A DNA stretch of 64,000 bases from Bugula neritina (lineage: Eukaryota; Animalia; Bryozoa): NCBI GenBank assembly GCA_964035545.1, contig OZ037773.1, positions 8,523,751 through 8,587,750 on the forward strand, given 5' to 3'. A program made the translations under genes and the position numbers. Position 1 is the stretch's first letter. Every line of letters begins with the position of its first letter. The notes under the pieces were generated by a model. The model saw only the letters and a list, made by a program, of their open reading frames with translations, did no database searches and had not been told where the DNA came from. Shown here piece by piece: positions 3,014 through 34,500 of this stretch.

Positions 3014-5524
3014 ATGGATGGCGGCATACTTACCCTAGGTCACATGATATGCTGGATATTACTGTTTATATTCTCTCTCCTCACGATCGCCCCGATGACC
3101 GTGTTGATTACCAACTTCTCAGGGCACTGTCTCCTAGGTGTCAGTATTACTCAAATCATGTGAGTATATCAGGTGTCAACGCGTCAGTACATCAAGTGTC
3201 AATATTAGAGGTAGGTGCAGTTATAGAGAAATTGAAAAACGCCTGTGTTCTGGATAAAAAATGTAGCAAAAGAAGTTATGTTCTCGTGAGAATTTCAACC
3301 CCAAACCAAAAGTTAATAAAATTAAAGAACTTAGGCTATCTCAATTTCTCCACTACTGCTTTTAAATGGAGTATCATTAGATGCAGCATTTTAAGGTTCT
3401 GTGAAATAATGAAGAATATTTTATAGAAATGTATAATTCATTGCTGTATTGTAAATTAAAAATTGTCTTCCCCAAAGTCACGGCTCTAAAGTCTGCACGT
3501 TTTGTATCTCGGCACAAGTCATGTGACTCATGTCTCTCACCAACTCTCTCACAGCTGGTGTCTGTTGTAGCAATGCATCACAACCCGTCGTCATGGCTAG
3601 TATCCACGGTAACGGAGGCAGGTGTGCGTTCGTCGAGCTGATGGGTTTTCTGGCTCTTTTCATGAGTATCGGACTGCTAGTGTGGCACTCTTATGTGCTG
3701 TTCAACTTGTGGCAAAGGTGGGCAGTATTCACCCCCTCCCCTACCTCCCACTATAGCCATTGTATTAAGTAGCGTTATTGTGTGTTTCTTGGGTCAAGGT
3801 TTTATCAAACTTATATAAATTTAGAGCGTTCACTTTTTAAAATTTCTGAATCATGAAATTTGGAAGAAAGGAGATAACTCTCAATAAACCAAATGAATTT
3901 TAAAATAATTATGTTACTCACTTTTACAAAAAAAATATTTTTAAGCACTGCCAAATTCGTAGAACCTATTTTCTGGAAGTTTTAGTCATTCACTATAAAT
4001 TAGAAATGCTGCAGAGTAACTGTTCACTGCAATTATTCGTAAGAATTTCCAAATTGGTCTGTTTTATAGATACAAGTAATTTTCCAGTCGATTTTATTCT
4101 AATTCATTCAAATCAGCCATTTGTAGATTAAAAATTTAAACTCTTTGATTTTTAAAAAACCTACTCTTACATAAATGAATCAATTAATAGAGAACTTTAT
4201 GCGGTTTCTAATAAGGAATTCTAACATAACATGGTGGGACAACTCTTGTAGCTCATGGCAAGAAAACTTTGCTGGTACAGCCATATCTGCTGCCTTAATG
4301 ATATTGATGCTCATAGCCAGTTCTGTCCTGACATCATCTGTCAACAAGTTCTGTTTGGAACTGAGACACAACTCTCTCGGGTTAGTGTGACTGTACTCTC
4401 AGTGTAACACTGTACTCTCAGTATAAATCTGTACTCTCAGTATAAATCTGTACTCTCAGTGTAACTCTGTACTCTCAGTGTGACTCTGTACTCTCAGTGT
4501 AACTCTGTACTGTCAGTGTAACTCTGTACTCTCACTATAACTTTGCACTCTCAGTGTAACTCTGTACTCTCACTATAACTCTATACTCTCAGTGTAACTT
4601 TGTACTCTCACTATAACTCTGTACTCTCAGTATAAATCTGTACTCTCAGTGTGACTCTGTACTCTCAGTGTAACTCTGTACTCTCAGTGTGACTCTGTAC
4701 TCTCAGTGTGACTCTGTACTCTCAGTGTAACTCTGTACTCTCAGTGTAACACTGTACTCTCAGTATAAATCTGTACTCTCACTATAACTCTGTACTGTCA
4801 GTGTAACTCTGTACTCTCACTATAATTTTATACTCTCAGTGTAACTCTGTACTCTCAGTGTAACACTGTACTCTCAGTATAAATCTGTACTCTCACTATA
4901 ACTCTGTACTGTCAGTGTAACTCTGTACTCTCACTATAATTTTATACTCTCAGTGTAACTCTGTACTCTCAGTGTGACTGTACTCTCAGTGTGACTGTAT
5001 ACTCACAGTATAACTATTTCAGATGCAATTCTGTGAACTACCATCACAATTCTTTATGGATAAGGTTTATAAACTCGGAGGGTAAGGAGGTGGAGAATAT
5101 TCACACTACTGGCTTTTATACTCTGCTGCAACTCACACAGGTATGTGCTATTCTTACTAATGTAGGCGTGTCACTCACGAATATAGGCGTGTCACTCACT
5201 AATGTAGGCGCGTCACTCACTAATGTAGGCGCGTCACTCACGAATGTAGGCGTGTCACTCACGAATGTAGGCGTGTCACTCACGAATGTAGGCGTGTCAC
5301 TCACTATTATAGGTATGTAATCAGGTTCAGGTAGTGTCACCAGAGTAGCTGTGATTTTTCAGGTGGGTGGTTGGCTCTGCTTCCTAACGCTTGTCGCCGT
5401 CACCATGATTTACAACGCAAAGCAGAGAAGCTCCTCCTTTGGACAGCCAGTGGCTAAGAATATTGGTAGAGAGAGGCAAAGACTCATCAATGGAGATCAG
5501 CGACGCTACGACCAAATCTCCTGA
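3014..5524 (+). CDS. TMEM179: TMEM179-family four-pass membrane protein (~245 aa, 5 coding exons)
   Basis: Phase-consistent GT-AG exons 3014-3159, 3571-3717, 4216-4380, 5023-5140, 5363-5524. Translation MDGGILTLGHMICWILLFIFSLLTIAPMTVLITNFSGHCLL...GRCAFVELMGFLALF...LIASSVLTSSVNKFC...VGGWLCFLTL...ERQRLINGDQRRYDQIS*. The FxGxCLL motif after TM1, the CxF before TM2 and four hydrophobic segments fit TMEM179 from memory. Tail has ExxxLI and YxxI sorting motifs. Confidence 0.75.
4383..5010. repeat. 19-bp minisatellite (TGTAACTCTGTACTCTCAG), ~33 copies, fills TMEM179 intron 3
   Basis: Direct reading; the intron is 4381-5022. Confidence 0.95.
5152..5312. repeat. 21-bp minisatellite (CACGAATGTAGGCGTGTCACT), ~7 copies, TMEM179 intron 4
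   Basis: Direct reading; explains repetitive ORFs 4991..5320 and 5116..5340. Confidence 0.95.
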
Positions 5525-7500
5525 ATATTCTCACGGTACGTTGTGTCACACCGTGTCATGTCAGTGTACTGTGACAGTCTGGTCACACCAGTTCAGTCTT
5601 GCCGTATAAAGACTGCCGGTATTGATTCTTTGAGTTGTTCTACTCACACTTGTTTTTCTGTCATTATTAATTGCTGAAGAAAAGTTGCGTGATGTGTGTA
5701 TTGGGTTGAGAGACTGTAATATTAGGTTTTATTCATAACTAGTGTAGATCTGAGATTAACTTTTCAATATGAGAAAAGTTAAACATGTCTGCTGTTTATT
5801 TGTAGTAACTATTTAGAGACTAAATTGCCGTCTGCATGAGGACAAAGTATCCAATCAGATTAGAGTTGTGGTGTTTTTTATCCATACTTGTAACACAACA
5901 TGTTTTATTCTGTGATAGATTGCTTTTGTATCTTTTTTTTTTTAGATTGGAACAGCCAACAAAGTAGAGCTGTGACGTTTCCCTCTTTTATTTATTAGAC
6001 CTTGCTGACTCAATCCAAAAATTGCTGACTAAATCAGAACAGTGCTATACACCCAATCCGTTGTGCATATTCTAAGTTATATCAATCATACTGTCACATT
6101 TCACTCATATTTGTACTTCAACATTTCCTATATGTACGCCATTATGTTCTTCTACTCGACAATCTCGCCGTTATTGCCATTTGCTCCATTAACACCCACA
6201 TCTATAGTCATTGGTGCTTTTCTCATTTTATTTGTGTTGCATTTTACTGCATGATTGTGTGTATTTTATTGGCTCAGCGTGTTTCATGTTGTTGAACTTT
6301 TTGTCGTCTTTTGTTGTAATGTAACCACACGAGATTCTGTTCACCCCGGAGAAGTATCTCAATTCGTATTTATTCACCAAAGAGTTCACTTTATATATGA
6401 TTTATTCTAATATGTTTTAGTAATACTAGTAGCAGCTGATTTCAGTTTTCTGGAAGTTTCTATTCATTCAACTCTTGACTGCGCCTAAATGATTATAAAA
6501 GAAATGAATTATTATTTATGCAATATTATAACTGCTGATATTTTTGTATTGGTGAAAAACTTGTTTTATTTTTTAGTATTGCGTGATTTACTCTTGCATA
6601 ATAAAGTTTATGAGGTGTAACGTGTCTTTTTTTGTTACCTTAGTTATTAAATTGATGTGTTTAAGCAGATCTAGAAGAAAAAATGATGATTCTTTGATGT
6701 GCTATTTGAAAGTCCCACAGTTGCTGCGTATTCTATAAAAATACTGCACAATTATAGTCAAATCTAAAACAATTTTAGACATCTTCTTCGAATAACATGG
6801 AATAAGCTACTGCATGCACCTCAGTGGTCTGTAGACACCAGCTGTTTCAGGAGTTAATAATAGTTGGGACAGCTTCCCGATTAGACATCTATGAGAAGTA
6901 TATACTGCATCAATACGTTACGTCTTAGTTAGCACACCTGCAAGCAACTGTTGGTGAAAAAATCTAAGACTACTTTTGCTACTCTGAAAGATTGGCTGCC
7001 AGGACAGTGACTAGGAAATCTCATCCTGACATGTTGTTATACTCTACATAGTAATCTTATGGACATCAAAATCTCAGAACTGAGCAGATAAAAGCCAAAG
7101 TAGATGTCTGGGGGGGGGGGGAGAAAAATTTAACCAATAGCCTGGAATTTTATTGCCATTGGCATGTGTAGAAGTGCTAACGGATAACAGTGAAACACAG
7201 ATCTATTGTTGAAATATAGAGTTACATGTATTATATATTTGCAAATTGAAACAGTAATAAAAGTTTTAGTTACATTATAAAATTATAAGATATACATTAT
7301 AGAATATAGAGGTTTCACAAATTGATCATGTATCAACAAATATACTAATATTGTGAAATGTGAAAAAATGTTAATAAATGTACATATATATTGTGAAAAG
7401 AAATATTTGAAAATTATAAGAACATAATTGTGTATAAAATTTTTCAAGCAATGTAATCATACAGATTTCAGTCAAACATAATATTGTGTTGAGAATATTA

Positions 7501-10500
7501 TTAACTGGTCGAAAAATCGTTTTTCGCTTCCTCCATGTAAGGCTGTTGGAAATGCAAATTGTTATCATAGTTTGTTGAGGAGTGACATGAAGACTGCAGA
7601 CAGTGTAGCTCTTCGGGAGAGCAAGGAATGTTCTCACACGAAGGTCTGCTGCCGCTACTCTGGCATCGGTAACCAACAGCGTACGGAATTATGCAATTGG
7701 CTGAAGAGTCCCATGATACAGCATCTCTGTCATCTCCATGGCCAAGGAGTACGCAACGTCTGGGAGGTACTTTTGACTTTGGTCTGAACTCCTCGTAGAC
7801 TGGGGCTCTGACAAAGCAGGGGGGAAGAGGGGCTAGTTCCCTTGGTGCCCGATCTTCTACACCTCTCCTGTGTAATAAACTCAAGTTTCAGCTCCTTTAA
7901 ATTACATGAAGTTGTGTTCCAATAACATAATACCACAATATATATAATTCAATTTAATCGCTTCGTATTGAATAATAGTTTATCATATATTATAGATTTT
8001 AACCCCATACTGGCAGCATGAATACATGTAATATTTAATCAACATTTGTAAAGTTAAGGGACGGTCTCTTTAGCTGGACAAATATTTCATGGACAAACCT
8101 TTTTCTCCTCACCATCATTGCCAGGAGTACTACAATTAGTAGCACTACTGCAACAGCCAATACGAGGACAGCGTATGATGTCCAGTCATCAAAGGAAAGG
8201 AAGTCACTCACGATTGCTTCTACAAAAAGAGAAAAGTTCAAGCTTACAATATTATTCTGACTATCTTTTTACTATCTTTTACCACTTTCATCCGCAACAA
8301 TTGTTATTGGGAGAGATAATATTATTTGTTGAAAATCATCATGCTCAATAAAAACATAAATTCTATAACACTAGAAGCTGTGGTGTAATGATATATTATG
8401 TTGTTTATAATGTAGTAACAACATAGCCCAAAAAGCAAGTATAAAATACAGAAAAATGAATTATGTTGTACCATTTCAAATTCTAAAGAAAGTTTACAAA
8501 AAGTTATGATGTATCTTTGAAATAAAGTAAAAACATATTTTACTCTGATACTTACAAGTCAAGACCAAAAAATGTATTGATGTTATGATTTGCTAAAATT
8601 CAACTTTGAACCTTAAAAAAATAGTTGCACTTAGATTTCATGCTTCAATAATTCTCATTTCTTAAACTCACCTGATTTAGCCGTCTTTGCTTCAACCTCT
8701 ACGAAAGATGTTGTTTTCATCACAGAAGGTGAAGTTGTCAGCGTTACTTTGTGTGTTGTTGTATACTGGGGGATAGCATCTATAAACATGTACAACACAT
8801 TGCATTGCATAATATATTATAATAGATATGATTTGCAATTTGCATATTATATAATAAAATAGAATAAATTTCACATTATATTATATAATAAAATATAATG
8901 AATTTCACTTTATATAATATAATGAATTTCACATTATACAATATAAAATTTTTTTAGTAATTACAGAACATATAATGCCAACTTGCATGCAAATTGAAAC
9001 ACTAACCTATGTTTTTCATTTATCACTTTGAGAGAGAAAAGCCAGATGTAAATTTATTAAATTGTGAATGTTGAAGGCCCAAGAGTGTGCAGAAAGCAAT
9101 TTGTTGTGTTCATCGATATTGCAATTAATAAGAACATAGTCTATGACATTATTTAGGGGAGAGTACAGCTCGTAACATTCCATTATAGGCTGATGAAAAG
9201 TATATTTCATTACTGTAGTTATATATAACAACTTTAACATAAGTGCATAGAGCTCAGTACAATTATAATAAAACACACTAACTCATTTGTTGTAAGGCAA
9301 AACTGTGAGCAGGTATTTCCAACATGACTATTATGTGTAGAGCAGTAGATATGAAAGATAGCGTTACTATCAGCTCTCATGACACATTATGGATATATTA
9401 TTTTGCATTGTGTAGTAGTATATTACATTACTCACCTTCTAAGGTAAGTACTTCCACACAGTCTTGATAACCAACATACAGTTGTCCTCCACTAGCTGAT
9501 ACACTGTTAGGTGATTTGTCGGCGCAGCTTCCGTTTAGGCTGGCGTTCCAAAAATTAGCTTTTTGTGAGTTGAGCAAATCAAATTGATGAATACCATCAT
9601 GGTCGGCAACCAGGAGTATGTCCACAGAGCGCAGAATGTAGAGGTCTTCTATATTTCGATACACTTCTTTTGAGCTTATTGTGCTATAATTTGTAGCACC
9701 ATTTACCTCTAGCAAGCGAGACCCCGTTGATAGTAGCAAATTGTTATTTTTTGGATTTACAGCCAAACTCCGTAAGTTGATGAGTTGGTGATCATCTTTT
9801 AGAATTGTTTCTACCCGCACACTTTGATAGTCTGCTGAGACTCGCAACAGCCGAACAGCGCTGTTCTTGGAGTCAGTTAAGTAGTACTGATCTTTCCCCT
9901 TGGCCGATACTATAGCATGTGGCTCATTGAATCTAGCTTCTGTACCTTCACCATTATTAAATTCAAAAAATGTACATCTACCGGCAAAAGGACTCGTTGA
10001 ATTTGTTGTTCTATCGACCAATCGCAGGCAATGATTTCTCTTATCAACAACTATGATATGTGAAGAGTTGACTTGGTGGAAACTTGTTATCAGGTTGAAC
10101 CTGGCTGAGAGACCTTGACCTTCTGAGTAACCTGATCGAGAATTTCCAACAAAGGTTTCAAGCCGCTTATCATGCTGCAAAGTACCCAGAGACTGAAAAG
10201 TGGCTATTATGAGTTGATGCCCAGGATTCCCTTTGTCCTCTTCAATGTGATTGGCTGTTGATGGGTATATTGACTGAGAATATCTTTTGTTCCCTGTTAT
10301 TGTTAACCTAATGGTTCAATAAAATTATTATTCAATATATCAGGCAAAAATGGTTCAGTTAAAAATTGCACAGGTAAAAATGGCACAGGTAAAAATTGCA
10401 CATTTTCAACTCTGGGGTTTGGGGGTTTGAGTTTGAGGTTTGGGAACATTTAAAATTAGCGTGCCATATTTGCTTAATTTCTGATTTGCACCATTATTAC

Positions 10501-10890
10501 CTGTGCCATTTTTACCTAAAGTTGCAAAAACTGGCAAGGTTGTACAAAACCAAGTTAGTATTATTTCTCAGCAACAAACATTTTACTTAAAAGCATTTCA
10601 GAGGGGGGGATGAAAACCCGCATGTTCTTACGATCAATCTATTCAGCATTGGCTTTTGTTTTACTCGGCCTGTTTTTGGTAATGTAAGATGAATAAATAG
10701 CATACGATGATTGTATCCACAAACTTTAATAAACATTATAATAATATATGTAACTAAAGCATGCTACCTGGCTGTACAAGTAAATAATCTATATGGCTAT
10801 TTCCTGAAAGAAAATTATTTTAACTTACCCAAGATATATGTTTATTAGTGATGAAACAATGAGATAAAGTTGAAGGAATAATTTAAGCAT
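7501..10890 (-). CDS. Type I membrane protein with NHL-repeat beta-propeller ectodomain (~509 aa, 5 exons)
   Basis: Phase-consistent exons 10890-10829 (signal peptide MLKLFLQLYLIVSSLINIYLG), 10307-9436 (NHL repeats GYSEGQGLSARFN..IIVVDKRNHCLRLV and NGEGTEARFNEPHAI..YYLTDSKNSAVRLL), 8779-8672 (Thr/Ser stalk), 8219-8099 (TM YAVLVLAVAVVLLIVVLLAMMV then RRKR), 7867-7501 (cytoplasmic tail). Total 1530 nt with no internal stop. Confidence 0.8.
10357..10518. mobile_element. Short MITE-like element in intron 1 of the NHL receptor gene
   Basis: Three tandem AGGTAAAAAT(T/G)GCAC-like units on the left, inverted GTGCCATTTTTACCT-like units on the right, and a GGGTTT-like centre. Confidence 0.6.
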
Positions 10891-10964
10891 TATTATTCAG
10901 ATATGTGCCCTCTTGTCCTTTATTTGACCTGGAAGAGTCCTCCCCCTACTCTACATTAATCTGA

Positions 10965-11694
10965 GCATTCAGCTATGTAGCTAGGTTGAAAGCTCAACAT
11001 GAAATGCTATTCTTGCAGTATATTCTGTGTAACTAAGTCTTTTCAGTAATGAGTCATGCCAAGTTACATAACACCCAATGAACTGATATTCCAAAACTTC
11101 CTTGTTCAACTATATAAACAATGCAACGTTAACTCTATTACGATACAAGTATATAAGGACTGATAAAGTAGATGCCACTGCATACCAATAGATAAGAGAA
11201 ATCTACTGTTATTGTTGATGCAAGTTGCTACGGCTCAATTGCATGCAATTTCAAAAAGTAAAAGTTTATTGTAGCCATTAAATATTTCGTTATTTACAAT
11301 TCTATAATCTGTTTGCTTTTGATTGATATATAAAGCTGAATGCCGTTAATTATAGAATAGTATGCATAAGATTCCAAAGTTGTTGCATTCATGTCTTAAT
11401 TTGCAAAAAGAAACATACATTTTCAAGTTTTGATTAAAGATCCATCAATTTAAATGCATATAATTCTGCTATAGTATATTTGCTATGTTCACACCACCGT
11501 GGGCATTCAGTTATGCAGCTAGGCTGCAGGATCAACATTAAATGCTATTCTTGCATTATAGTCTTTGTAACATAATCCTTTTCAGTCATGAGTCATGCTA
11601 AGTTACATAAAAGCCAATGAATTATCTTTACAAAAAGTTCTTTGCTTAATTTAACAATACATTATTAACTTCATTACAATACAAATACACTAGG
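10965..11694. repeat. Diverged ~195-bp direct duplication (10965-11160 and 11503-11694) upstream of the NHL receptor gene
   Basis: Colinear blocks GCATTCAG..AAATGCTATTCTTGCA..TTTTCAGT(A/C)ATGAGTCATGC(C/T)AAGTTACATAA..CCAATGAA. Confidence 0.85.
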
Positions 11695-12825
11695 TATCAT
11701 AACCTGGGTGACTTCCCCCTTGGTGGTAATTTTAGCTTTTAATGGAGGGGAAAAATTTCACACAGGTGGTGAGTTGCGTAAATTTGAGCTCTTGCCTTGT
11801 TTCCCAATTACAGTACGGGTATATCTATAAATCCCATACCATAGTTCGTTTACTTATCTGAACTACATTTTGCAGTCTAAGTCTATTATTCACTTCAACA
11901 TAACTACTACCCTTGCTATACTGTGAATTGAAGCTAGAAAGTTTCAATTGAAAGCCAATTAAAACTAACAGCGGCCATGCAAGCTATGAGTCACCACCTT
12001 TCTGTGAGGTGAGATTCTCATTAATGCTAACCATTGAAAACAAGAAGTGACTTGCCAAGTAGCCTGAGAAGGTGCCAGGTTCAAAAGAGCCAGACTTGAG
12101 CAAGATGGCACAAAAGCATCAGCTGCAGCCATCACATTAATAATTGAACTGCTCTGTATTTTAGAAATGCATAATATAATTATCAGAGACAATTATAATA
12201 TTATGATCCAATATTACAGAACAAATATAGATTTGTATAGTATATTGACTATCAAATAAATTGGGAGGAAGTTGATAGTACAAGTTTGTGAAAGAGAGAA
12301 TAGTATGAAGGTGGAAAACCACTTCGTTATACCATATTTGTTTATTATTCTTGTACATACATGCATGTTATTCGTAAGGTTTTAATCAAAGGGGCTAAGC
12401 TTTTGTGGCTGAAGCTAAATTGACTTGCATAACATTTTATTGCATTAAATATTATACTATACAAAATTTATATATAAATATCATTAGCTATCTAGTTACA
12501 AGTTGTAACACACTGACAATACTTGATATATTATTATACTACTTCATTCAATATGAGAAAAGCTAACTTAAAAGGATGATTGGCATGATACAACAATATG
12601 AAATATCAAGACATAACTTAAACTGTAAAAGCAGCTACAATCATAAAAATATAAAATGTGTAAAACATATCAAAGTAGTATATTGAATATAATGAATAGA
12701 AAAAAGAGAGAGAGAGCTAGTATTTATAAATTCACAGGTATTTTAGAAAGGAAAATATTATAAAACAGAGTATAAAATCCATCAACAGTGACTGGTTGTG
12801 ATGGAGTAACCATTTGGTTCTGAGA

Positions 12826-12985
12826 GGTAGGTAACAGGTGAGTAGGTAACAGGTGGGTGAGCAACGTGTGATTAGGTAAAAGATGAGCAGGTAATGACTG
12901 AACAGGTAATCAGGTAATGAGTGAACAGGTAGCCAGTGAGTATGTAATGAGTGAGTAGGTAATGAGTGAACAGGTAACAGGTAAT
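12826..12985. repeat. Degenerate AGGTAA(C/T)GAGTGA-type tandem repeat downstream of the SLC5 stop
   Basis: Direct reading. Confidence 0.7.
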
Positions 12986-13146
12986 CAAAGTAGTTTAGAA
13001 ACAAATTAATCACACCTGAGATACACAGTAATTGTCTTTATTCGAACTTATTTTTTAATGACATGAAAATTTTCAAAATCTAATTTCAACAAAATATTGA
13101 TCACAGCTTTCATCAACTTGAAATAATTTGTATAGATAATATACAT

Positions 13147-13292
13147 GCAGTACAGTACAATACAGTGCAACAGTACAGTACAACAGTACAGTACAACAGT
13201 ACAGTGCAATACAACAGTACAACAGTACAGTACAACAGTAGAGTACAGTACAGTGCAGCGCAGCGCAGCGCAGTACAGCACAGCACAGTACA
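13147..13292. repeat. Pentanucleotide microsatellite (CAGTA/CAGCG/CAGCA)n
   Basis: Direct reading; source of the Cys/Tyr/Val ORFs at 13048-13304. Confidence 0.9.
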
Positions 13293-13568
13293 ACAGACAT
13301 ACAATATAGAAATTATAGAAATTAACTTACTGTATTAGTTTGCTTTGTAAGTTTAGGAGAAATCATAAAAATCAATTGATAAACCAGGAAATATGTACTG
13401 TGTGTTAATGTACAATGTTTAACCTGACTTCAGTAGAATTATATTTTGTTAAAACTGCAGAATCTAAAGTAAGTAAGTACTAAGATGTAAGTACATAGAG
13501 ATAAGTATTAAGAAGTAAGTAGCCTACTAAGAAGTAAGTATTAAGAGGTAAGTATTAGGAGGTAAGTA

Positions 13569-16500
13569 TTAAGCCCAAAAAGCAAAGAGGAAAGTCCCTA
13601 TGACCATGAGAACAATGGCTGAAGCATCACATAGGATCTTCCAACGTTTCTGCTCCTTCAGTGACAAGTGTTGGTGTTCAGCTTCTGAGCTGCCCTTGAC
13701 CTGAGAGGTCACCTGTTTATCAATGCCGCATACCCAGAGGAGGGCAGTTTTGTACCAGGGTCTTCTGTGTGTTGAGTCTGTCAAGTAGAAGAGGACATGA
13801 GGATGAGAATACTGCTAGTAGTTTACTACTGTTTTGTTTATTATCATTACTATTAGTTTATTATCATTACTATTAGTTTATTATCATTACTGTTAGTTTA
13901 TTATCACTACTATTAGTTTATTATCATTACTGTTAGTTTATTATCACTACTATTAGTTTATTATCATTACTAGTAGTTAATTATCATTACTGTTAGTTTA
14001 TTATCATTACTAGTAGTTAATTATCATTACTATTAGTTTATTATCATCACTATTAGTTCATTATCATTAATGTTAGTTTATCATCATTACTATCAGCTAA
14101 TAGCTTACCATGATTCAGTCCATTATCATTATCATCAGCCTCAGTCTGAATGTGGATCTCCTCAAGTCTCTCTCCCGACTTGTCGACAGCAGCTGCCGTG
14201 TCCTCATTAATCACCTCATTGTCAGTGATGGCCGTCTCGTTTTCGTTATTATCTACAGATATTTCAGCCATTCAGGGAACATCTAGATACAACCTTGAAC
14301 TTTCTATACGAACATTTCAAGAGCACACGTGGATACAAGCACAGAGATGGAGGGTCTACAATTATATAGTGGAATACATTCTGTAGAGGTTGTGTAATAT
14401 TTCCGTAGTGAAATAGTTGAAGAAAAAGATGTGAAAAAATTTATAGGCTAGGAGTAGAGAGAACAGAACTCCATTTATTGTGCTTGGATTTCAATTATAA
14501 TACATGTGGAGAAAATTCCTATATCTCTATAATACAGCCATTCAATGTGAGTTTAACTATTTAGACTAGTTGAAGATGACAAATCTCAAAGAGAGTACAA
14601 CTTCACTGAATTGCTACTAGGCTTTAACTAAAGGGAAACCTGCACATACTACGCAATCATTCTCTTTACTAGGTCACAGTCACACCATCTTGGAGTTGTC
14701 TTATTAACTTTGATTAACATTACCAATAGTGTGTAAGTAATAACCTTACCAACTAGTACCAACTAGCACCGTACCTGCAGGAGGAGAGACTTCCTCTGTA
14801 TCCAGATCTGTTCTCACCTCAGAGCTATGTCGGGACCAGAATGTCAGCCGGTAGAGCTACAAGGGAAGTGGTATTGATGAGAATTCTAGTTTTTCATCAT
14901 ATTATATACTCTAGCTGTCTGAATACACTCTAACGTACTATATATACTCCAGCTGTCTGTATAAATACTCTATCTGTATATATAAATATGTCAACTACCA
15001 ACTTAAACAGCTTTCACAACTTTTTATAGTCACTATATATTTCAGGATTTGGTAGCACCAGCTTTGAGTAAGAGACTACTTTATGTTACATAATAATGTG
15101 AAAGCTGACCAGATACAATATAATATAATACAATATAATATAATACGATATAATAGAATACAATATAATGTGTATAGAATAATAGGGATAATATAATAAG
15201 ATATAGATAATACATAATACAACAAAATAAGTAGAAAATACTATAATAGGTATAACATTATAATACCTATAATATGTTATATTATAGATATAATATAACA
15301 TATTAGGTAGAATATAATATAACATAACACAATAGATAGAGCATAATAAAACATATCAAATAGATTAGCAGTAGACAGAGAGAGTTGATAAACTCACATG
15401 TTTCCTATCGATAGGTTTAGTCAGGATGGAGACAACGACTACTATGATTCCCGTGAAGAAGAAAAGGAAAGTTCCGAAGTAGAGGTAGTGGAAGTCTCTA
15501 ACAATGGCCGGCCGGTAGTCTGTGGGATCTTCGCACGTCGGAGACTTGTATGAATATTGAATGGCGAAGCGAATGAGTCCAGTTCCTATACCAACCACGA
15601 GCCCCACGAAGGCACCCTGTAGATGTGTTGAATAAGAAGTAAAGGAACAATCGGCACCAGTATTTCACAAGCATGTTGGTAGTTAATTAGCCCAATGCAG
15701 CTGCATTTAACACAGCGATGTCTATGAATTTCGTATCACTGAGCTCTATGCTATATGCTTTAGAGAGACAGAAACATAAGATGGTAACCAAGGAGACAAA
15801 AAAGCATTAACAAGTTAGTAAAGTACTAGTTATGATCATTTTTGAAGCTGAAAATTAGTTTATTTGAAAACAACAGCTTTGGTGAGCAACTTGGATATAT
15901 TTTCACACGTCCTGTTTTGTGTATAACTCAATAGAATAGAGCTGACACCACCAAAACATGTTACTACATTGCATTACTATATCCTTAGAGCTGTGATTGG
16001 GCAAAGTTCTTATGTGTAATTTTATTCTCAAAACCTCAACTTATAAGGCTCATGATAACAAAAGTGGTGAGTGATGAAACTTTTCTGTAGAAACTCTGAC
16101 GTCACTTGAAACAAACCTACCAGCTCATTGGCTCGAGACCAGAAGAGTCCAGCTATAAACACGGCTATGATTGGTGGCTGGAGAAAGCTGGAGATTTCCT
16201 GTATGTAGACAAACAGTTCCGTCCCCTGCGACTGTTTGATGATGGGAACCCAGAGGACACTTAGGGCTACTAGTATTAGTACAAACACTCTGTAATATAT
16301 ATTACACTGGCTACTAGTATTAGCACAAACACTCTGTAATATATATTACACTGGCTACTAGTATTAGCACAAACACTCTGCAATATATATTACACTGGCT
16401 ACTAGTATTAGCACAAACACTCTGCAATATATATTACACTGGCTACTAGTATTAGCACAAACACTCTGTAATATATATTACACAGTCTATTAGTATTAGT

Positions 16501-19500
16501 ACAAACACTCTGTAATATATATTACACTGTCTACTAGTGGTTATTGCGGGTGGGGTATCATACCTCCCAACAATCATCTGTTCTCGTGGTGAGGCCTGCT
16601 TCCTCAGCCTCATCCAGATGTCTATGGTGAATATGGTGCTGCTAGAGTTGAATATAGAGGTCAGCGAGGACATGAGAGCTGCCAGCATCACGGCAAGCAT
16701 CATGCCACGGGCACCTGTAGGACATGTCATAGGTGGTCACATGACGTCACGTCAAACATAATAAAGTAAAGTATTAAAATAATACGTATTTCTTTGATGG
16801 GAATTTCAATATTTGAAAAAAACTTGGAATATAAAACAACAACATTTACTAAAGGCTAAGTATGAACTGTAACCGAGAGTGATTTAGTCAGTCAGAGGTT
16901 GTGAACTTATGATAATATCAACAAGTTGGGGCCGTGTGGCGGACCTTCCTACCACATCACTAGTACAAACCAACCCACTCAGCTACATTTTCCACAGTCT
17001 TCTCTAATCTGCCAGAAAAAGTAGTCTACTTCAAACCAGCTCCGCCAGATTTGATACTTTTTGGCAAGGATTTGATTAGAATTACATTTCTTAGACTCGG
17101 GACTTACCTATGGGCATCAGATTGAGAACGAGGGTGGGGTAGGCAATGTTCGAACAGCCACTAGCAGAGCCACAGACGGCCTTGCAAGTCTCCGAATCAG
17201 CGCAGGCCACCGTGTCTGTTCATAAAACAGCATCTCTAATCAATTTGATTATTATGTGTAATAATTACCTACGCTACAGCAATAGCCAGACTACTAGTAC
17301 ACAAGTGGTTGTCATAGCTACCAGCTCACCAACTCTAATATACTTGGGAAATATTTACAAAAAGAATATTTAATTTGTTGCCTTACAGTAGGAAGAAAAT
17401 CAACATTCTCTTACAGAAACATCAAAAGACATAAATTTTAATAGACAGTAGTAAAGGTAGTCAAAATTGTTATCAATACAATACATCTGGAAAGAGTGAA
17501 GATAAACTGCTGGAATTTTCCAGACTAATGACTGCACCTCACAATTACAATTACTTATACTTAACATAATGTGATGATTTTCCTTAAAAACCTGGAATGC
17601 ATATAACCAATTATATAAATTAGTATTCCCATAATACATGTTCTCCAATATTACAGCTGATGGAACTAGAATAAATGGCACTAAACTGATGTGTTGTTAA
17701 TAATGCTATGAATGCCTGCTTATGTTCAGAAATAAAAACATGGCAAAGATTGACATTTATTTAAAATCTGAAATTATTTCAAAAATGAATAAATGTTCTA
17801 CTGTTTCAAGCTAATCTATGCTAAGAAGTCAAATAACTACAATAAAGTAGAGTTGGGAAATACCTACCAGGATATAAAATCCGTGCGATCATTCCAGGAA
17901 AAACCAACGTGAACAAAGGCAATACTTTGAGGAAGCCTGCCAGCACGGTCCCAGCTTTGGCATGTGTGAAGTTCTTAGAAGCCAAGGCTCTTTGAACAAT
18001 AACCTAGACAGAGAGAAGACAAATGCCAGTTGGAACTTTATAAACTCAGTATTCACTGTAACTAGCACAGTGTTAGTAACTTGCGTTTCAAAAGTAGATC
18101 ATTGCAAATCTTTCAGAGATGGTATATGAGATGATGTTTTCAATATTATTTCCACAATCAAAAGCTGGTATAAAGGCCGAGTAATGTGGTTATAATATTG
18201 TAAGTATGTATTTAATATTGTTCAATAGATGAGATAATGCAACTTCAAAACATGTAAGAAAAGAGATTGCCCATCTATAGACCACATTCTTTATTTATCA
18301 GACGGCATTATAGTTGCAGTTTATTCATAACAAGAAGGTAACTACTGTGACAGAATGTAGCCTAGGATACCTGGTCGGCACACCAGTACCAGAGGGAGTT
18401 GATCATCACCCCAACTAGTCCTGGCCAAGGCAGGTCCCCAGTCTTAGGGTCTCTAAACAGGTTCATGTAGTCCTTCCTGGGCAGGTTACAGCTGCTGTTG
18501 GAGAGAATTACGTTGGTGGCCACAGCTGTTGGGTATTTCCGCACCATTTCCTCGTACCCGCCCACTCTTTCAAAGCCTGTAACCAGTTTACCATCAAAAT
18601 GGTGAGTGTGAGCATAGAACTCACACTATATCTGGTATAGAACCCACACTATATCTGGTACAGAACCCACACTATACCTGGTATAGAACTCACACTATAT
18701 CTGGTATAGAACCCACACTATATCTGGTACAGAACCCACACTATATCTGGGATAGAACTCACACTATATCTGGTATAGAACTCACACTATATCTGGTATA
18801 GAACCCACACTATATCTGGTATAGAACTCACACTAACAGAGGTGAAGGTAACTCGACTTACTAATAATGGTGAGGACTATTGCCCCTATCAGCATGAGTA
18901 TGGTCTGTATGAAGTCTGTCCACACCACCGCTGTCAGACCTCCAGTGATGGTAAATATGGCAGCGACAGCGAGCAGGGCGAATATACTGGGGTAGGTGTT
19001 CCACTTGAGAGACTGCTCTATGAATATGGCTCCAGCGTACAAGTCGGACTGAGAGATATACAGAAGAGTTCATTGGAATCAAACAGAAGAGTTCATTGGG
19101 ATCAGACAGAAGAGTTCATTGGGATGAAACAAAGCTAAGTATGTAGTATGTAACATAACACAGTAAATAGAACAAAGAATGTGGTACAAAAATTACGAAA
19201 CTTTTACTCTATCTTAAAACCATGAAATTGCAAACCAGCCACTACACAAATAATATGGTTTGTTGGGAGTAGACAAGGTAAATGTTTGGGTATATCTGTG
19301 TAGTGGGTGAAATGCAAAGGTAGCTATTACTATTGATATGGTACTTTCATCATGTACAGGTTTGTGCCTAATTTTATTAATTATAATAGACAGTCAATAG
19401 ACTAATAAGAGATTATTAAAGTACTGTTAGTAGACTGTTAATAGACAGTTAGTAGATTCGTAATAATATTACTAGACTAGTAATTTTCTGTTAGTGAATC

Positions 19501-21734
19501 TAGAAATCTGTGCATAAGCCATTTAAAAAGTTAAAAATAATTTGCCTTGAATTAAACTCCTTAGATATAATTTAAATCTACAATTTAAAATATTATATAT
19601 TAAAATGTAATATAATATAAAGACTTGAAGAGAATGGGACACTAGATCCATGAAGCACTAATTTATTCAAATGTAAACAATAACAATTCCTTCCAGGATT
19701 CAAACTTATTTAACATGCAACACATAATCTCAAATACAAACAAGATCCACTCCCTTCAAGTAAGAATTATCTTAGCACAGGGTGCAGCACTCACGGAAAT
19801 CTTAGTGAAGACGTAAAGTAGTAGAGCGAGAACTGCAAGGGACACACGAATACGAGCTCCTCCAAATCTTAGCCTTAGGTACTCTGGCATAGTAGAGATC
19901 CCACCAGCTATGTAGACGGGCACAAACAGCCACCCCAACATCAACACAATGTAGATAGCCTAATGGAGAGAAATGCAATCACAGTAATTAGAATGAAGTT
20001 CCGTGATTTATCAATGAAGTTTAGAGTATTTTAAACAAATACAAATGTTCAATTTATTTCCTAAGAACTAGACGGCCATCCCATACTAAGTGTATGACAT
20101 TCAGGACTAGGGAACAAGCATCTTACGTTGATCTCATAGACGCCTACTCCTATACCAGAGTTGGCTCCACTCCCAGCGAGTCCAACAAAATGAATACTGC
20201 CGATATTACTGGCGAATATAGAGGCACCGACCTGCAAACATACAGAACTAGCTTGATTAGAGCCAGACATGCGTCAAAAGAGATACAGTCAGAGTTCTTC
20301 CAAATCTATCAAGTACTTGGCGAGGTTTTAGCCACAAGTACACTGGGTATTTTATGTTTTTTTGGTAGTTTCCATAGCAAAATGGCATTTAGGAATAAAC
20401 TGGGGGGAAATTAACATAGCCTAAGTTCTTTAACTTTATTATTAACTTTGGGTTTGGGTTGAAACTTTTGTTGAGAACATAACTTCTTTTGCTACATTTC
20501 TAATCTAGAACACAGGCTTTTCTTAATTTCTCTAATAATGCACATACCTCGCAAATGGTTATAACAGAAAGTCGGTATAGAAAGTAGTTAAACCTGGGAC
20601 AAAATAGAAAGGTCAGCTCTCCCAGTTACTATTTCTAAATCTTATGCTAATATTATGTAACACACAGGCAAAGACACACTGTGAACACATGCATAATAAA
20701 TTAGGAAAACTTTGATTCTGAATCTGATATCCCCAACAGAGATTAACAATGGAGCCAGACAAAAGGAAAACTAATAACAGTACAAAAGGTGACATGTGAT
20801 ATGATCATATGATACGTAATATATGATTACATGGTGCATATTATATGATTATATGCTGCAGCATTGAAGATAATAGAGTATCATTACGAGCCATGCTTAT
20901 GCAATGAGTTTATTCCCAAAACTGATTTATACTGCAAAGTATAGCCGCAATATTCTACCAGAATTATCAAATTAAACAGGAACTAAGGAAATCACTACAA
21001 GGTTAATGAGGAATATTGCTGTTTATTTCAAGATGCAATAATAAAGGAGTTAACTCTATCTTGGAACCGATAATCATTACAAGTGTTTATGCTAAGTTAT
21101 GGGAAGTAAACAGTTAACAAAACCAGATATTAGCCCCTGGGAACATTTTATAGTCAACAGTGGTTGGGGTGGGGGTTGGGTGTCACAGTAATATAGTTGA
21201 TTGTCACTTACAGGAATCCAGTGCATGCTTCTTCCAGCCAGAAAATATCCATCTACACTACCTCTGTTAGCTCTTGAGGTCTACAGCATGAATATACAGG
21301 TAGTAGAATATATGAACAATACACAGGTAGTAGAATATATGAACAACATACAAGTAGTAGAACTTATGAAATCATGGAATTACAGCTGCAAAGTTGGTAC
21401 ACTGCAGAGTAAAATGATATCAACTATAGAAAAGTTATGTTTTGATTGAGGATGTAGTGAATTATCAGCCAAGGTGATCAGTTTGTTCAACCAGGCTGCT
21501 AGCTGCACTCCCTTCTGTTATATGACATCACGTTTTACTTGCAGTCAACTCTAAGTTAGGATTTAACAAAGGTACATGTCACATGTCAAGATGAAGCAGG
21601 TATGTGGTAGTGCCACTACTTACCCATAAGCCAATGAGAAGGACGATGGCAAAGTAGACAACAATAACGAGTATATCTGACCAGTGTAGCGAGGTACCAG
21701 TCACTAAGTTATTAGTACTACTAGTCACATCCAT
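13569..21734 (-). CDS. SLC5 sodium:solute symporter, SGLT/SMIT subfamily (SLC5A1/9/11-like), 14 coding exons
   Basis: Exons translate to family motifs [128 protein letters not shown] and a final TM ending FLFAFWA*. All junctions GT-AG. The exact vertebrate orthologue cannot be assigned by eye. Confidence 0.95.
13838..14095. repeat. 21-bp minisatellite (TTATTATCATTACTATTAGTT), ~12 copies, last SLC5 intron
   Basis: Direct reading. Confidence 0.95.
16264..16538. repeat. 44-bp minisatellite, ~6 copies, spanning an SLC5 3' splice site
   Basis: Unit TAGTATTAGCACAAACACTCTGTAATATATATTACACTGGCTAC; the first copy overlaps the exon start at 16289. Confidence 0.95.
18614..18835. repeat. 23-bp minisatellite (AGAACYCACACTATATCTGGTAT), ~9-10 copies, fills most of an SLC5 intron
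   Basis: Direct reading. Confidence 0.95.
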
Positions 21735-31594: not shown

Positions 31595-34500
31595 ATGGTG
31601 TCAATCATGAATCAAATATGGGTGCTATGCTCTGCAGTCCTCATAGTTTCAGCTCACACAGGTGTGTATGCCCTCAGTCAAGGTATATTTTTAGCTACAT
31701 CTGTGTATAGGATTTGATACCCTAACATCATGTGATGCGAGAATAGAACCAATGCTACAAGAAACTCTCTCATCTACTAAACGTTTCAGAAACCAACATT
31801 TACTTAGCTAATGCAAGCTGAGTTTCTCAATGACCTCCATGACATGTCCTGAATTTAGCAAATTTTTAGTTTCTCAGACAAACTTTGAAAGTTTATGGTC
31901 TGCATTTTGTTTGTAATAACTGCTCTGCAAAATGTCATCTGTAGTTGTAATCCTCATAAATATTAGGCAGCTTGTTATTTTGATGCCCTGTCTCTCTGTC
32001 TGTTTGTCCATCGGTGAAAAATGCTCAATAGCACAAACACAGTTTCTACTCATTCTCTGTTCTGGAAATCATTTTGCAGAAATTATCCACCAGTTTCCAT
32101 AATTTGTAATAAAGATTTAAACTAAAGTGTGCTGAAAGGCAGTAGAAAGTTATTTTACACTGCAAGTGTTTAATTCCTGTAATTTTAATTGTAATTGAAA
32201 TCTTGTCAGTTCAAACAATTTTTGTGCAAAAGTATAATTATGACCAAAAAAATGTTGATGTGATACAGTTCCCCTTGTACATTGCACTACAGTCCCACAT
32301 ACATATCACACTACACTATCACACACATTTCACACTACAATATCACACACATCACACTATATAAATTGATTCTATACAGGCAGGCTGTCCCACTTGTCTT
32401 TTGCTCTCAAATAATTAGTACAAAATATGTTTCTCATTAACTACAATTTCCTTAGCAGTGTAACCTGACACTCCAGCCATACGGGGCTTGTTCATACCTT
32501 CCCTACTCAAAGCCTATGCTCATCAAAGATAGCTTAGGCTAAGTGTGAGCTATTGTTCTCTGAATTAAGTGTTAGTGTAGCCAATTAGCGCACAGACTGG
32601 CAATGAGGCCAATATTCTAGGCAGATTGAAACAGTATGCTGTAATTCTACCAGCCTTGTTACTGCGTAACCTTCTAAAGTTACATGATGATACGTAGCAG
32701 CTGCTAGCCCGCATTCCTTTGTTTATAGCTGCTACATATACTGGGAGTTACTTGCTCTCTTCATAATAAGTAAAGAAAAGACAACTCTAAAATTATTTTT
32801 CTTTTTCGATTGACAAACTCAGCTATCAATAGTTTAGTAGTTAACAAGTGTAAATTAAAATAGTTTGTGTGCCTATGTTGCCTGTATTCCTGTGGATGTG
32901 GGCAGTGGTCAAGCTACACACACTTTGTAACAAGCTAGCTTCAGGGAGGCATTCAGTGCTACTTTGAAAGCTTCCAATAGCTTCCACCACCGAGGCAAAG
33001 CTTTTAGCCATCCAAATGCTTTGCAATTCTCTACAAATGTAGTGCTCATATAAGTTTTATCGCAATTCAATAATTCAATTGTTTTTCTTGTAATTTTTTT
33101 TAGTTGTAAAGAGACAGGCACCTTTGCAGGTAAATATTATACCTTTTTTTCAATATTATTTTACATACAAGCTTAGATATATGCTCTCTCTGTCTTATAT
33201 ACTACCCATATGTTATTTTTGTATTATTAGGAATTATCTTCCTTGTCGGTTACTTGCAATTGACAAAATAATGCATTGGCTCCTAGTTTAGCAGATAATT
33301 GTAACTTATAGCTGTGCGACTTATATAGCTGTATTAGTATTTCTGAAGAACCTAAATTTCTGGGTGTTCCTGATATATTACGTTTAACATGTACATAAAT
33401 ATTTCCATCTGATAACTTGATGCTTATTGGTGCAGTTTGATGAACCAACAAAAGGGCAGCAGCTGCCTTTGTCAGTGCCTTCTTTAGATGGCGCTGTTGG
33501 AATGCTGCCAGTAAGTAAGACGAGTGTTGCACTGCTTCTTAGCTGTAGATCAACTCTGTCTGTTTGTCTAGTTTAGCTGTAGATAAACTGTGTCTGTCTG
33601 TATGTCATGCTGTAGATCAACTCTGTCTGTCTGTTTGTTCAGGAGCAGTTAAATTTCAGGACAAATCTATCAGCTTGCATGTGCATCTGCAGAATACATC
33701 AGTTTGTTATGTCTAGCTGCATATATGCTCTGTATAACAGGATGAGTAGCTGTAGATAAACTCTGCCTGCCTTTGCATCTATCTGCATATAAACTCTATA
33801 CTAGTCTGCATGTATAGCAGCAGATAAGCTCTGGTAGTCTGCATGTATATTTATCTGTAGAAAAACTCTGGTAGTCTGCATGTATTTCTATCTGCAGATA
33901 AACTCTGCTTGTCTAACTTGTTGTTTTAAGGAATCTCTTTTTCTCTCAAAATATATTTCAATTTCTTCTCAAATATGGAAGCTAAAATTTAGTTACTGTT
34001 ACTTATTATTTGGCTGAATTTTGTTTTGTACTGTAATCGGTGTAATATTCAACAATTTTATTTAAAACGAGTAGATTTTTAAGCTTCTAGCTACATTTGT
34101 CTATTGTGAAATTATCCTATCATTTACTTTTGCTATGAAGCAATTTCTTGCTATCACTTGGGATAGAAACAATAATCATTTCTATTTGTACATCAAAAAA
34201 CATGGTGGCAGCATTAATTTGCAGTGCTCTGTACCCTGTTAATTAATATTATGGCAGGTATGGTACTGTAATGCCACATTTCAACAGTTAGTGTTGTAGC
34301 AGGTATAGTATTGTAATACCACATAATCTGTAAGTATTAGCTCAGACCTGTGGGCACTCACAATTCATATGTAGGCATATAAATTACTCTTAAATGCTTT
34401 TATATTCTGTAAGTACATAATTGGTTACTTATTGATTTAAGGGTGCTCCCGGACCACGTGGACCAGTAGGTAAAGCTGGAGCACCAGGTCCAGCTGGTTT

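Follow-up and report, generated by a model that had tools for sequence, protein, structure and literature searches.

The window analysed here is a 64-kb stretch of chromosome C9 of the bryozoan Bugula neritina, and the minus strand of its positions 7501-10890 carries a five-exon gene whose product is probably a surface receptor of a Bugula family of NHL-propeller proteins. Judged by its frames, splice sites and conservation, the gene is intact and maintained by selection, and the protein that it is predicted to encode is a type-I single-pass membrane glycoprotein. NHL propellers of animals are known from the intracellular TRIM ligases, NHLRC2, PAM, and the teneurins, and to our knowledge the plain succession of signal peptide, propeller, transmembrane (TM) helix and tyrosine-containing tail has been described only for trypanosome adhesion proteins. 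What is new is an architectural variant on the known NHL domain, in a bryozoan receptor family for which no paper was found in the literature search.

If the receptor reading is correct, the NHL propeller serves as the head of conserved surface receptors in the phylum of the bryozoans, for which functional genomics hardly exists. This would be relevant to innate recognition and to the way in which the animal deals with the bryostatin-producing symbiont that it houses. The gene in the window is single-copy, syntenic and moderately constrained and has one ectodomain and three invariant tyrosines, and it thus offers a tractable entry to the ligands and the signalling of the family.

Gene structure and protein layout

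Five open segments on the minus strand, read from 10890 down to 7501, join into one gene of 509 codons; all eight splice sites are canonical GT/AG, and the phases 2, 1, 1 and 2 are compatible and close to the full 509 codons. Exon 1 (10890..10829, 62 nt) contains the ATG and encodes the signal peptide with 20 codons plus 2 nt, in which one lysine is followed by a hydrophobic run of 17 residues, and it ends at a GTAAGT donor. Exon 2 (10307..9436) is the longest open frame of the whole 64-kb window and encodes the entire six-bladed NHL beta-propeller with its 872 nt and 290 aa; Pfam finds NHL (PF01436) in it at residues 126-152 with 27.1 bits against a cut-off of 20. The domain and the exact exon length are as given in a first-pass annotation of this DNA. 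Exon 3 (8779..8672, phase 1-1) encodes 35 aa with 37% Ser+Thr, and of the "mucin-like stalk" under which it had been described the Ser/Thr richness stands, but with only 35 residues the segment is no true mucin domain and is, by length and composition, better called a short linker. Exon 4 (8219..8099) encodes the acidic stretch DFLSFDDW, a hydrophobic TM helix of 23 residues (hydropathy 2.78 over 21 aa), and an RRKR stop-transfer signal. Exon 5 (7867..7501) finally encodes the cytoplasmic tail of 121 aa and the stop; the tail includes the blocks LPPCFVRAPVYEEFRPK, SWDSSANCIIPYAVGYRCQSSG, ENIPCSPEELHCLQ and MEEAKNDFS, and all four motifs that had been named at the outset, VYEEF, IPYAV, NYDNN and PYMEE, are present in it. 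Pfam gives no match on the linker, the TM exon or the tail.

The ectodomain encoded by exon 2 contains four cysteines (93/111 and 261/283, which would pair in two probable disulfides) and five N-x-S/T sequons, and the tail contains no sequon. As the cysteine pairs and the sequons are confined to the ectodomain and as the charges show a positive-inside pattern, the product is predicted to be a type-I membrane glycoprotein. The five-part gene model and the receptor layout that had been proposed from the letters are thus present at these coordinates, with consistent splice sites and phases.

Conservation in other Bugula lineages

In the 2020 draft genome of B. neritina (GCA_010799875.2), contig VXIV02002100.1 (L033) is collinear with window positions 4220-18976 at 81-91% nucleotide identity and holds exons 1-5 in order, with 85, 85, 71, 89 and 75% amino-acid identity. 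Two JGI contigs of sample 3300002729, which represents a third lineage of the Bugula neritina complex, hold exons 2-4 at 87, 94 and 86% identity (L031) and exon 5 at 83% identity (L032). All alignable splice sites are kept between the window gene and these orthologues, and the indels of the exons (3, 18 and 6 nt) are all in-frame, whereas those of the introns range from 5 to 542 nt. The ratio of nonsynonymous to synonymous substitution rates (dN/dS) is 0.37 in both exon 2 and exon 5 (the latter in comparison with L032), 0.16 in exon 3 and 0.31 in exon 4, at a dS of about 0.19-0.21, and this range of 0.16-0.37 at a dS near 0.2 indicates constraint. The gene is real beyond chance, since two other lineages of Bugula have the same set of five exons with the same splice sites and reading frames. 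It is also listed in the 2020 annotation as "hypothetical protein EB796_014303" (P0163, 420 aa), with exons 1-2-3-4 joined in the identical way; that annotation was made by AUGUSTUS with transcriptome hints (PMC7576161).

Because the gene is conserved, syntenic in a 1:1 manner, and has a propeller dN/dS of 0.3-0.4, its product looks like a fixed receptor and not like a hypervariable marker, as far as can be judged from the sequences. The 1:1 conservation, the synteny, and the dN/dS of 0.3-0.4 for the whole propeller argue against a polymorphic or hypervariable self/non-self marker.

Several aspects of the gene model itself count against a receptor gene as proposed here. The signal peptide was assigned by inspection and not by a predictor; the searches, folds and dN/dS calculations were all run exon by exon; the sole sequencing run that was found (X1) consists of DNA contigs that cover the introns; and the last coding exon of P0163 is a different small exon in place of exon 5. 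The homologue of that small exon lies at window positions 6227-6332 (minus strand), where the acceptor AG is changed to AT and where there is no stop. Exon 5 is taken as the true last coding exon because it is open and constrained in three lineages and in a paralogue on chromosome C4 (described below), and because the alternative acceptor is lost. The segment at 6227-6332, which has 106 nt, is 91.5% identical to the last exon of P0163, compared to about 84% in its surroundings, and could be a conserved element of the 3' untranslated region or another regulatory element, or else a lineage-specific alternative exon.

These aspects also bear on the idea that the locus is not one functional gene at all, either because the NHL exon is not on the same transcript as the TM and tail exons or because the locus is a decaying copy. 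The lack of RNA reads, the other last exon in the 2020 annotation, and protein searches that returned no full-length protein would fit this idea, but every frame is open and the phases fit throughout the 509 codons, three lineages and the paralogue share the exon order, with the low dN/dS values and with in-frame indels only, and in the window the acceptor of the alternative last exon is gone. A split or decaying locus is thus highly unlikely.

Some observations at the locus can be added. Intron 2 of L031 contains (at about 1330-1700) an insertion of 364 bp, which the window lacks and which looks SINE-like (short interspersed nuclear element), with two tRNA-like halves. At window position 7646 in exon 5, X1 has a 6-nt in-frame insertion of two extra Ser codons at the same site as L032, together with about 3% substitutions, and by these differences the run seems to come from the JGI-like lineage and not from the assembled individual. 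A repeat in intron 1 (window 10360-10515) reaches a summed X1 contig depth of 10,000-20,000 compared to about 100 in its flanks, and there is a second short high-copy repeat upstream of the gene (window 12019-12215); taken together, the two have an X1 depth of 6,500-20,000 as compared to about 100 around them, and many internal joints, which suggests a MITE-like (miniature inverted-repeat transposable element) or satellite-like element. The upstream neighbour of the gene, at window positions 15113-18976 (minus strand), is a sodium:solute symporter gene (Pfam SSF) in conserved synteny with L033:1-3811.

The propeller fold

An AlphaFold2 model of exon 2, made with an alignment of 22 family sequences, has a predicted local distance difference test score (pLDDT) of 90.4, a predicted template modelling score (pTM) of 0.91, and about 24 strands, and exon 2 is confidently predicted to fold as a six-bladed NHL propeller. 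Along its whole length the model can be superposed on solved NHL propellers with six blades, at Z scores of 26-30. The best matches are plant SOQ1 (Z 30.5; VIA-align 2, root-mean-square deviation 2.4 over 272 residues) and human NHLRC2 (Z 30.1), followed by a teneurin-like protein (Z 28.1), by TRIM71, Thin and Lin41 (Z about 28), by lactonases (Z about 27), and by the lyase PAL (3fvz, Z 26.3). A profile of the family, when compared with the sequences of the PDB, recovers NHLRC2 at an E value of 1.6e-28, SOQ1 at 3e-26 and TRIM2 at 1e-7, and weakly also the LDL-receptor propellers at 0.003-0.007. The repeats had been likened to the NHLRC2, plant and bacterial type, and both the profile and the Z scores (30 as compared to 28) are in agreement with this. 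The columns that are conserved in the 22 sequences are those with a structural role in the NHL repeat (G, D, N, R, P) and the pair Cys93/Cys111.

With lactonases and PAL among the structural matches, a membrane-bound enzyme has to be considered, which would be either a monofunctional PAL-like lyase or a hydrolase of the lactonase/SGL type. Such enzymes, too, have a six-bladed propeller between a signal peptide and a TM helix. Several lactonases indeed have Z scores of 26-27, and in PAM a TM helix and a routing tail likewise come after the propeller. However, every enzyme match ranks under the non-enzymatic propellers of NHLRC2, SOQ1 and TRIM proteins, the family profile does not reach PAL (3fvz) at an E value of 0.01, and there is no invariant or near-invariant histidine in the 22-sequence alignment, as it is the structural positions and the two cysteines that are conserved. 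A PAL-like or lactonase-like enzyme was rejected on account of the histidines and of the profile, and an enzyme of either kind is the most improbable of all explanations considered here.

Three further known groups were tried as a home for the gene and rejected. TRIM-NHL proteins do not fit, as the signal peptide directly abuts the propeller, as there are cysteine pairs of the extracellular type and sequons, and as a genome-wide scan for B-boxes found none at C9:8.53 Mb or in the arrays of related propellers. Teneurins, which are type-II proteins with EGF repeats and a YD shell, do not fit because the window protein is predicted to be type I, as the signal peptide opens it and the TM helix lies behind the propeller, and because Pfam finds only PF01436 and no TEN_NHL at E values up to 1. 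NHLRC2 and SOQ1 do not fit as family members, because only the 20-residue signal peptide and no thioredoxin-like domain lies upstream of the propeller, and the N-terminus of P0163 is the same in this regard.

The propeller family in the genome

The B. neritina assembly tzBugNeri2.1 of the Darwin Tree of Life comprises 216.00 Mb and 9 chromosomes (PMC11480708). Exon 2 has at least 136 matches in this genome, nearly all of them uninterrupted frames of about 290-370 aa. Most lie in arrays on three chromosomes, namely on C2 (41 matches; arrays at 24.67-24.85, 25.6-25.8 and 33.09-33.28 Mb), C7 (39; 13.5-13.8 and 14.0-14.7 Mb) and C8 (43; 7.58-7.97 Mb), and the others are found on C9 (4, including the window gene), on C4 (3, a trio at 8.37-8.39 Mb), and scattered elsewhere (6). 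Exon 2 shows the marks of this family, which are a propeller of about 290-330 aa on one uninterrupted exon, an N-terminal HIEED-like strand, the motifs GY.EG.G..ARFN and VVD..NHCLR, and the pair Cys93/Cys111, and the respective columns are invariant or near-invariant in the 22-sequence alignment. According to these shared marks, the window gene belongs to a family of the Bugula lineage that comprises about 140 or more one-exon propeller genes.

The trio on C4 contains the closest copies, with 64, 47 and 33% identity, and a TM exon follows each of the three propellers. The first C4 gene has also exons that resemble exons 3, 4 and 5, with 70% identity to the window gene in exon 4, and is therefore a paralogue of the full architecture. 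The tail of the window gene has only two copies in the genome, the other one being that of the first C4 gene (51% identity, E 3e-12). In a maximum-likelihood tree, the window gene groups with L031 and L033 (support 98/99), this group is sister to the first C4 gene together with B. neritina L030/EB796_015631 (99/99), and the second C4 gene comes next. With a dS of about 1.1 for the duplication as compared to about 0.18 for the split of the lineages, the duplication took place before the B. neritina lineages separated, and neither copy has been lost. The window gene thus sits with the C4 trio in a small TM subgroup, and it and its sister, the first C4 gene, each have an orthologue of their own in another B. 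neritina lineage. On this phylogenetic evidence, the window gene was born by duplication of a complete receptor gene.

The gene had been described as an orphan that arose by exon shuffling, with a domain obtained by retroposition or by horizontal transfer. It has, however, 1:1 syntenic orthologues, one of them annotated (EB796_014303), a C4 paralogue that shares its tail, and a propeller that occurs on single exons in at least 136 copies, so that it is no orphan. Nor does the proposed origin apply as an event in the history of this gene, as the long exon is found family-wide and as the complete gene was duplicated. Since a long single exon is the norm in the family, it is no evidence of retroposition or of a transfer into the window gene, and a recent transfer of the domain likewise has nothing in the sequences that would speak for it. 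The NHL exon is also not a symmetric shuffling module, as its phases are 2-1, and it was passed on together with its neighbours.

The assumption of a lineage-specific gene agrees with the searches, as close relatives were seen only in Bugula material. The nearest sequences from outside Bugula are generic NHL proteins with about 30% identity over two blades. A search of representative proteins was dominated by giant multi-NHL proteins of about 30% identity, and all three that were scanned carry bacterial-type domains. Protein searches with exon 2, with the B. neritina protein P0003 and with exon 5 returned only exon-sized or partial proteins and no full-length relative, a metagenome scan with the tail gave no match, and a look-up in a protein atlas gave generic NHL clusters only.

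A TM exon after the propeller is found also in two C8 members, at C9:7.93 Mb, and at C7:0.3 Mb, and the statements on the C8, C2 and C7 subfamilies are based on few examined members and on the pairing of coordinates. In the C2 and C7 arrays, a Cys-containing exon of about 75 aa with the pattern C..L.v.WPTD..fP ("WPTD exon") lies 1.3-3 kb downstream of propeller exons. The WPTD exon has no Pfam match and occurs in 86 copies, which are found beside family members on C2, C7, C5 and C1 and never on C8 or C4 (examples are L025:6573-6815 and L024:6137-6364, both on the plus strand). No convincing TM exon was found in the examined members of the C2/C7 type, including the region after the WPTD exon.

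The cytoplasmic tail

The tails of the window gene, its two orthologues and the C4 paralogue can be aligned, and in these four sequences there are four invariant blocks, P-V/A-VYEE-[F/V], PYAVGYRC, S-x-EE-x-x-CL, and QP-x-MEEAKNDFS, which are separated by variable and indel-rich spacers. Structure prediction gives a pLDDT of 56, a pTM of 0.12 and no secondary structure, and the tail is accordingly predicted to be disordered and built of short linear motifs; together with the absence of any Pfam match this agrees with the first-pass annotation, in which the tail had no enzymatic domain. Of the four tyrosine motifs listed there, VYEE and PYAV are strongly constrained and NYDNN weakly, but PYMEE is not constrained at its tyrosine. 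The YEE-hydrophobic motif is conserved in all four tails, as YEEF in the window gene and both orthologues and as YEEV in the C4 paralogue, so that Y-E-E is invariant.

In the third C4 gene, an open frame of about 200 aa that is rich in tyrosines follows the TM exon (L022:1120-1731, minus strand, which corresponds to C4 at about 8,382,120-8,382,731). This frame contains LYEH, LYEV, EYDNN, LYDNN, and QYEPM, and thus has YDNN twice, and it cannot otherwise be aligned with the tail of the window gene.

The sequence pYEE-hydrophobic is the optimum of Src-family SH2 domains, pYxN is the SH2 motif of Grb2, and YxxPhi is the signal for AP-2. SH2 exons were found in the genome, and the tail tyrosines in pYEE-Phi or pYxN context are candidate SH2 ligands, as in the tails of receptors that signal by phosphotyrosine.

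Proposed function

In the receptor reading, the propeller may bind an extracellular ligand, which could be a glycan, a protein or another propeller, and the invariant tyrosines of the tail would relay the binding. The most likely relay, which we put forward tentatively, is that VYEE[F/V] (as a Src-SH2-type site) and YDNN (as a Grb2-type pYxN site) would become phosphorylated and would recruit SH2 proteins. Some details of the tail do not favour this. NYDNN or KYDNN is present in each of the three orthologue sequences, but the paralogue has a deletion in its place, the tyrosine of PYMEE is a cysteine in one orthologue and in the paralogue, and YEE[F/V] fits an SH2 ligand and an endocytic YxxPhi signal equally well.

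The double fit of YEE[F/V] leads to an endocytic or sorting receptor, which ranks second and is rather unlikely. In such a receptor, the propeller would capture cargo, AP-2 and clathrin would mediate the uptake via YEE[F/V] as YxxPhi, and the acidic CK2-type site SPEE would add to the sorting. The YWTD-propeller receptors of the LDL-receptor family, sortilin, and membrane PAM all work by a propeller combined with a sorting tail, YEEF and YEEV both satisfy YxxPhi with an invariant Y-E-E, the SxEE block is invariant, the tail is predicted to be disordered like sorting tails, and the family profile weakly matches the propellers of LDL receptors. The tail has no NPxY, however, and a [DE]xxxL[LI] signal is absent from the window gene, being confined to the paralogue (EINCLL). 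Docking sites, more than sorting signals, are suggested by the recurrence of YDNN and by the many tyrosines in the tail of the third C4 gene.

An adhesion molecule ranks third and is somewhat less likely again. By analogy to FLA1 and FLA1BP of trypanosomatids, with which the layout agrees (PMC10675206), an NHL propeller would bind another one in trans or in cis, and the partner might be one of the many family members without a TM exon; dozens of related propellers are encoded in the genome as potential partners. What does not agree is the tail, which with its 121 aa and four invariant blocks far exceeds the FLA tails of 16-45 aa.

For a phosphotyrosine-signalling receptor, the family suggests an extension that is a long shot and that we rate below the sorting and adhesion explanations: the TM members with tyrosine tails, such as the window gene and the C4 trio, might form the conserved signalling arm of a bryozoan-specific NHL-propeller recognition system. 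These fixed receptors would then transduce their own ligands, or complexes with the many propellers of the family that have no TM exon, via phosphotyrosine docking of the Src/Grb2 type. If true, this would be a class of animal pattern-recognition receptors without counterpart in other phyla.

Other features of the window

Three further regions of the window were noted. On the plus strand, at about 34000-41000, there is a GC-rich block (41-44% as compared to about 35%) with Gly-X-Y collagen exons, which is probably a gene of a fibrillar collagen. On the minus strand, tandem repeats of about 22 aa that are YPYFTLHGIPTLHYMVSLLYIT-like lie at 47.0-47.5 kb (within 47012-48949), and a sushi-like Cys-rich frame lies at 48.5-48.9 kb. 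Also on the minus strand, there is near 59.3 kb (59175-59507) an LNR-like open frame that is rich in Cys and Asp.

Comparison with known systems

The best relatives of the propeller, in structure as well as in sequence, are human NHLRC2 (6g7w/6gc1) and the lumenal NHL domain of plant SOQ1 (7djj-7djm), with Z scores of 30.1-30.5 and root-mean-square deviations of 2.4-2.8 over 272-276 residues. They share with the window propeller the G..G..ARFN.P type of repeat, but the identity is only 14-16%. In NHLRC2, which is cytosolic, and in SOQ1, a thioredoxin-like domain precedes and a C-terminal beta domain follows the propeller, whereas the window gene has a signal peptide before it and linker, TM helix and tyrosine tail after it. 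The TRIM-NHL proteins (TRIM2/3/71, Brat, Thin) also share the six-bladed NHL propeller (Z 26-28), but they are intracellular ligases with RING, B-box and coiled coil, in contrast to the window gene with its signal peptide and TM helix.

In terms of layout, the trypanosomatid proteins FLA1, FLA1BP and GP72 are similar, but in layout only, with a signal peptide, an N-glycosylated NHL ectodomain, a TM helix and a tail. FLA1 and FLA1BP act via a contact of propeller to propeller and thereby hold the flagellum to the cell body (PMC10675206). These proteins belong to kinetoplastids, and their tails of 16-45 aa are without tyrosine-motif blocks, whereas the tail of the window gene has 121 aa; a literature search for an animal counterpart of the FLA-type layout found none.

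Membrane-bound PAM comes close in another way, as its PAL part, in the lumen of the secretory pathway, is an NHL-type propeller with six blades, behind which come a TM helix and an unstructured tail for routing, but the Zn-binding His triad and the catalytic Tyr and Arg in the centre of PAL are not conserved in the window propeller family. The YWTD propellers of LDL receptors belong to another propeller family (with a marginal E value of 0.003-0.007), and the window gene differs from the LDL-receptor family also in having no EGF or LDL-A modules and no NPxY. As a working analogy, it is nevertheless the LDL-receptor YWTD propellers and sortilin that can serve, in which a propeller ectodomain is combined with a single-pass membrane anchor and with a tyrosine-based signal in the tail.

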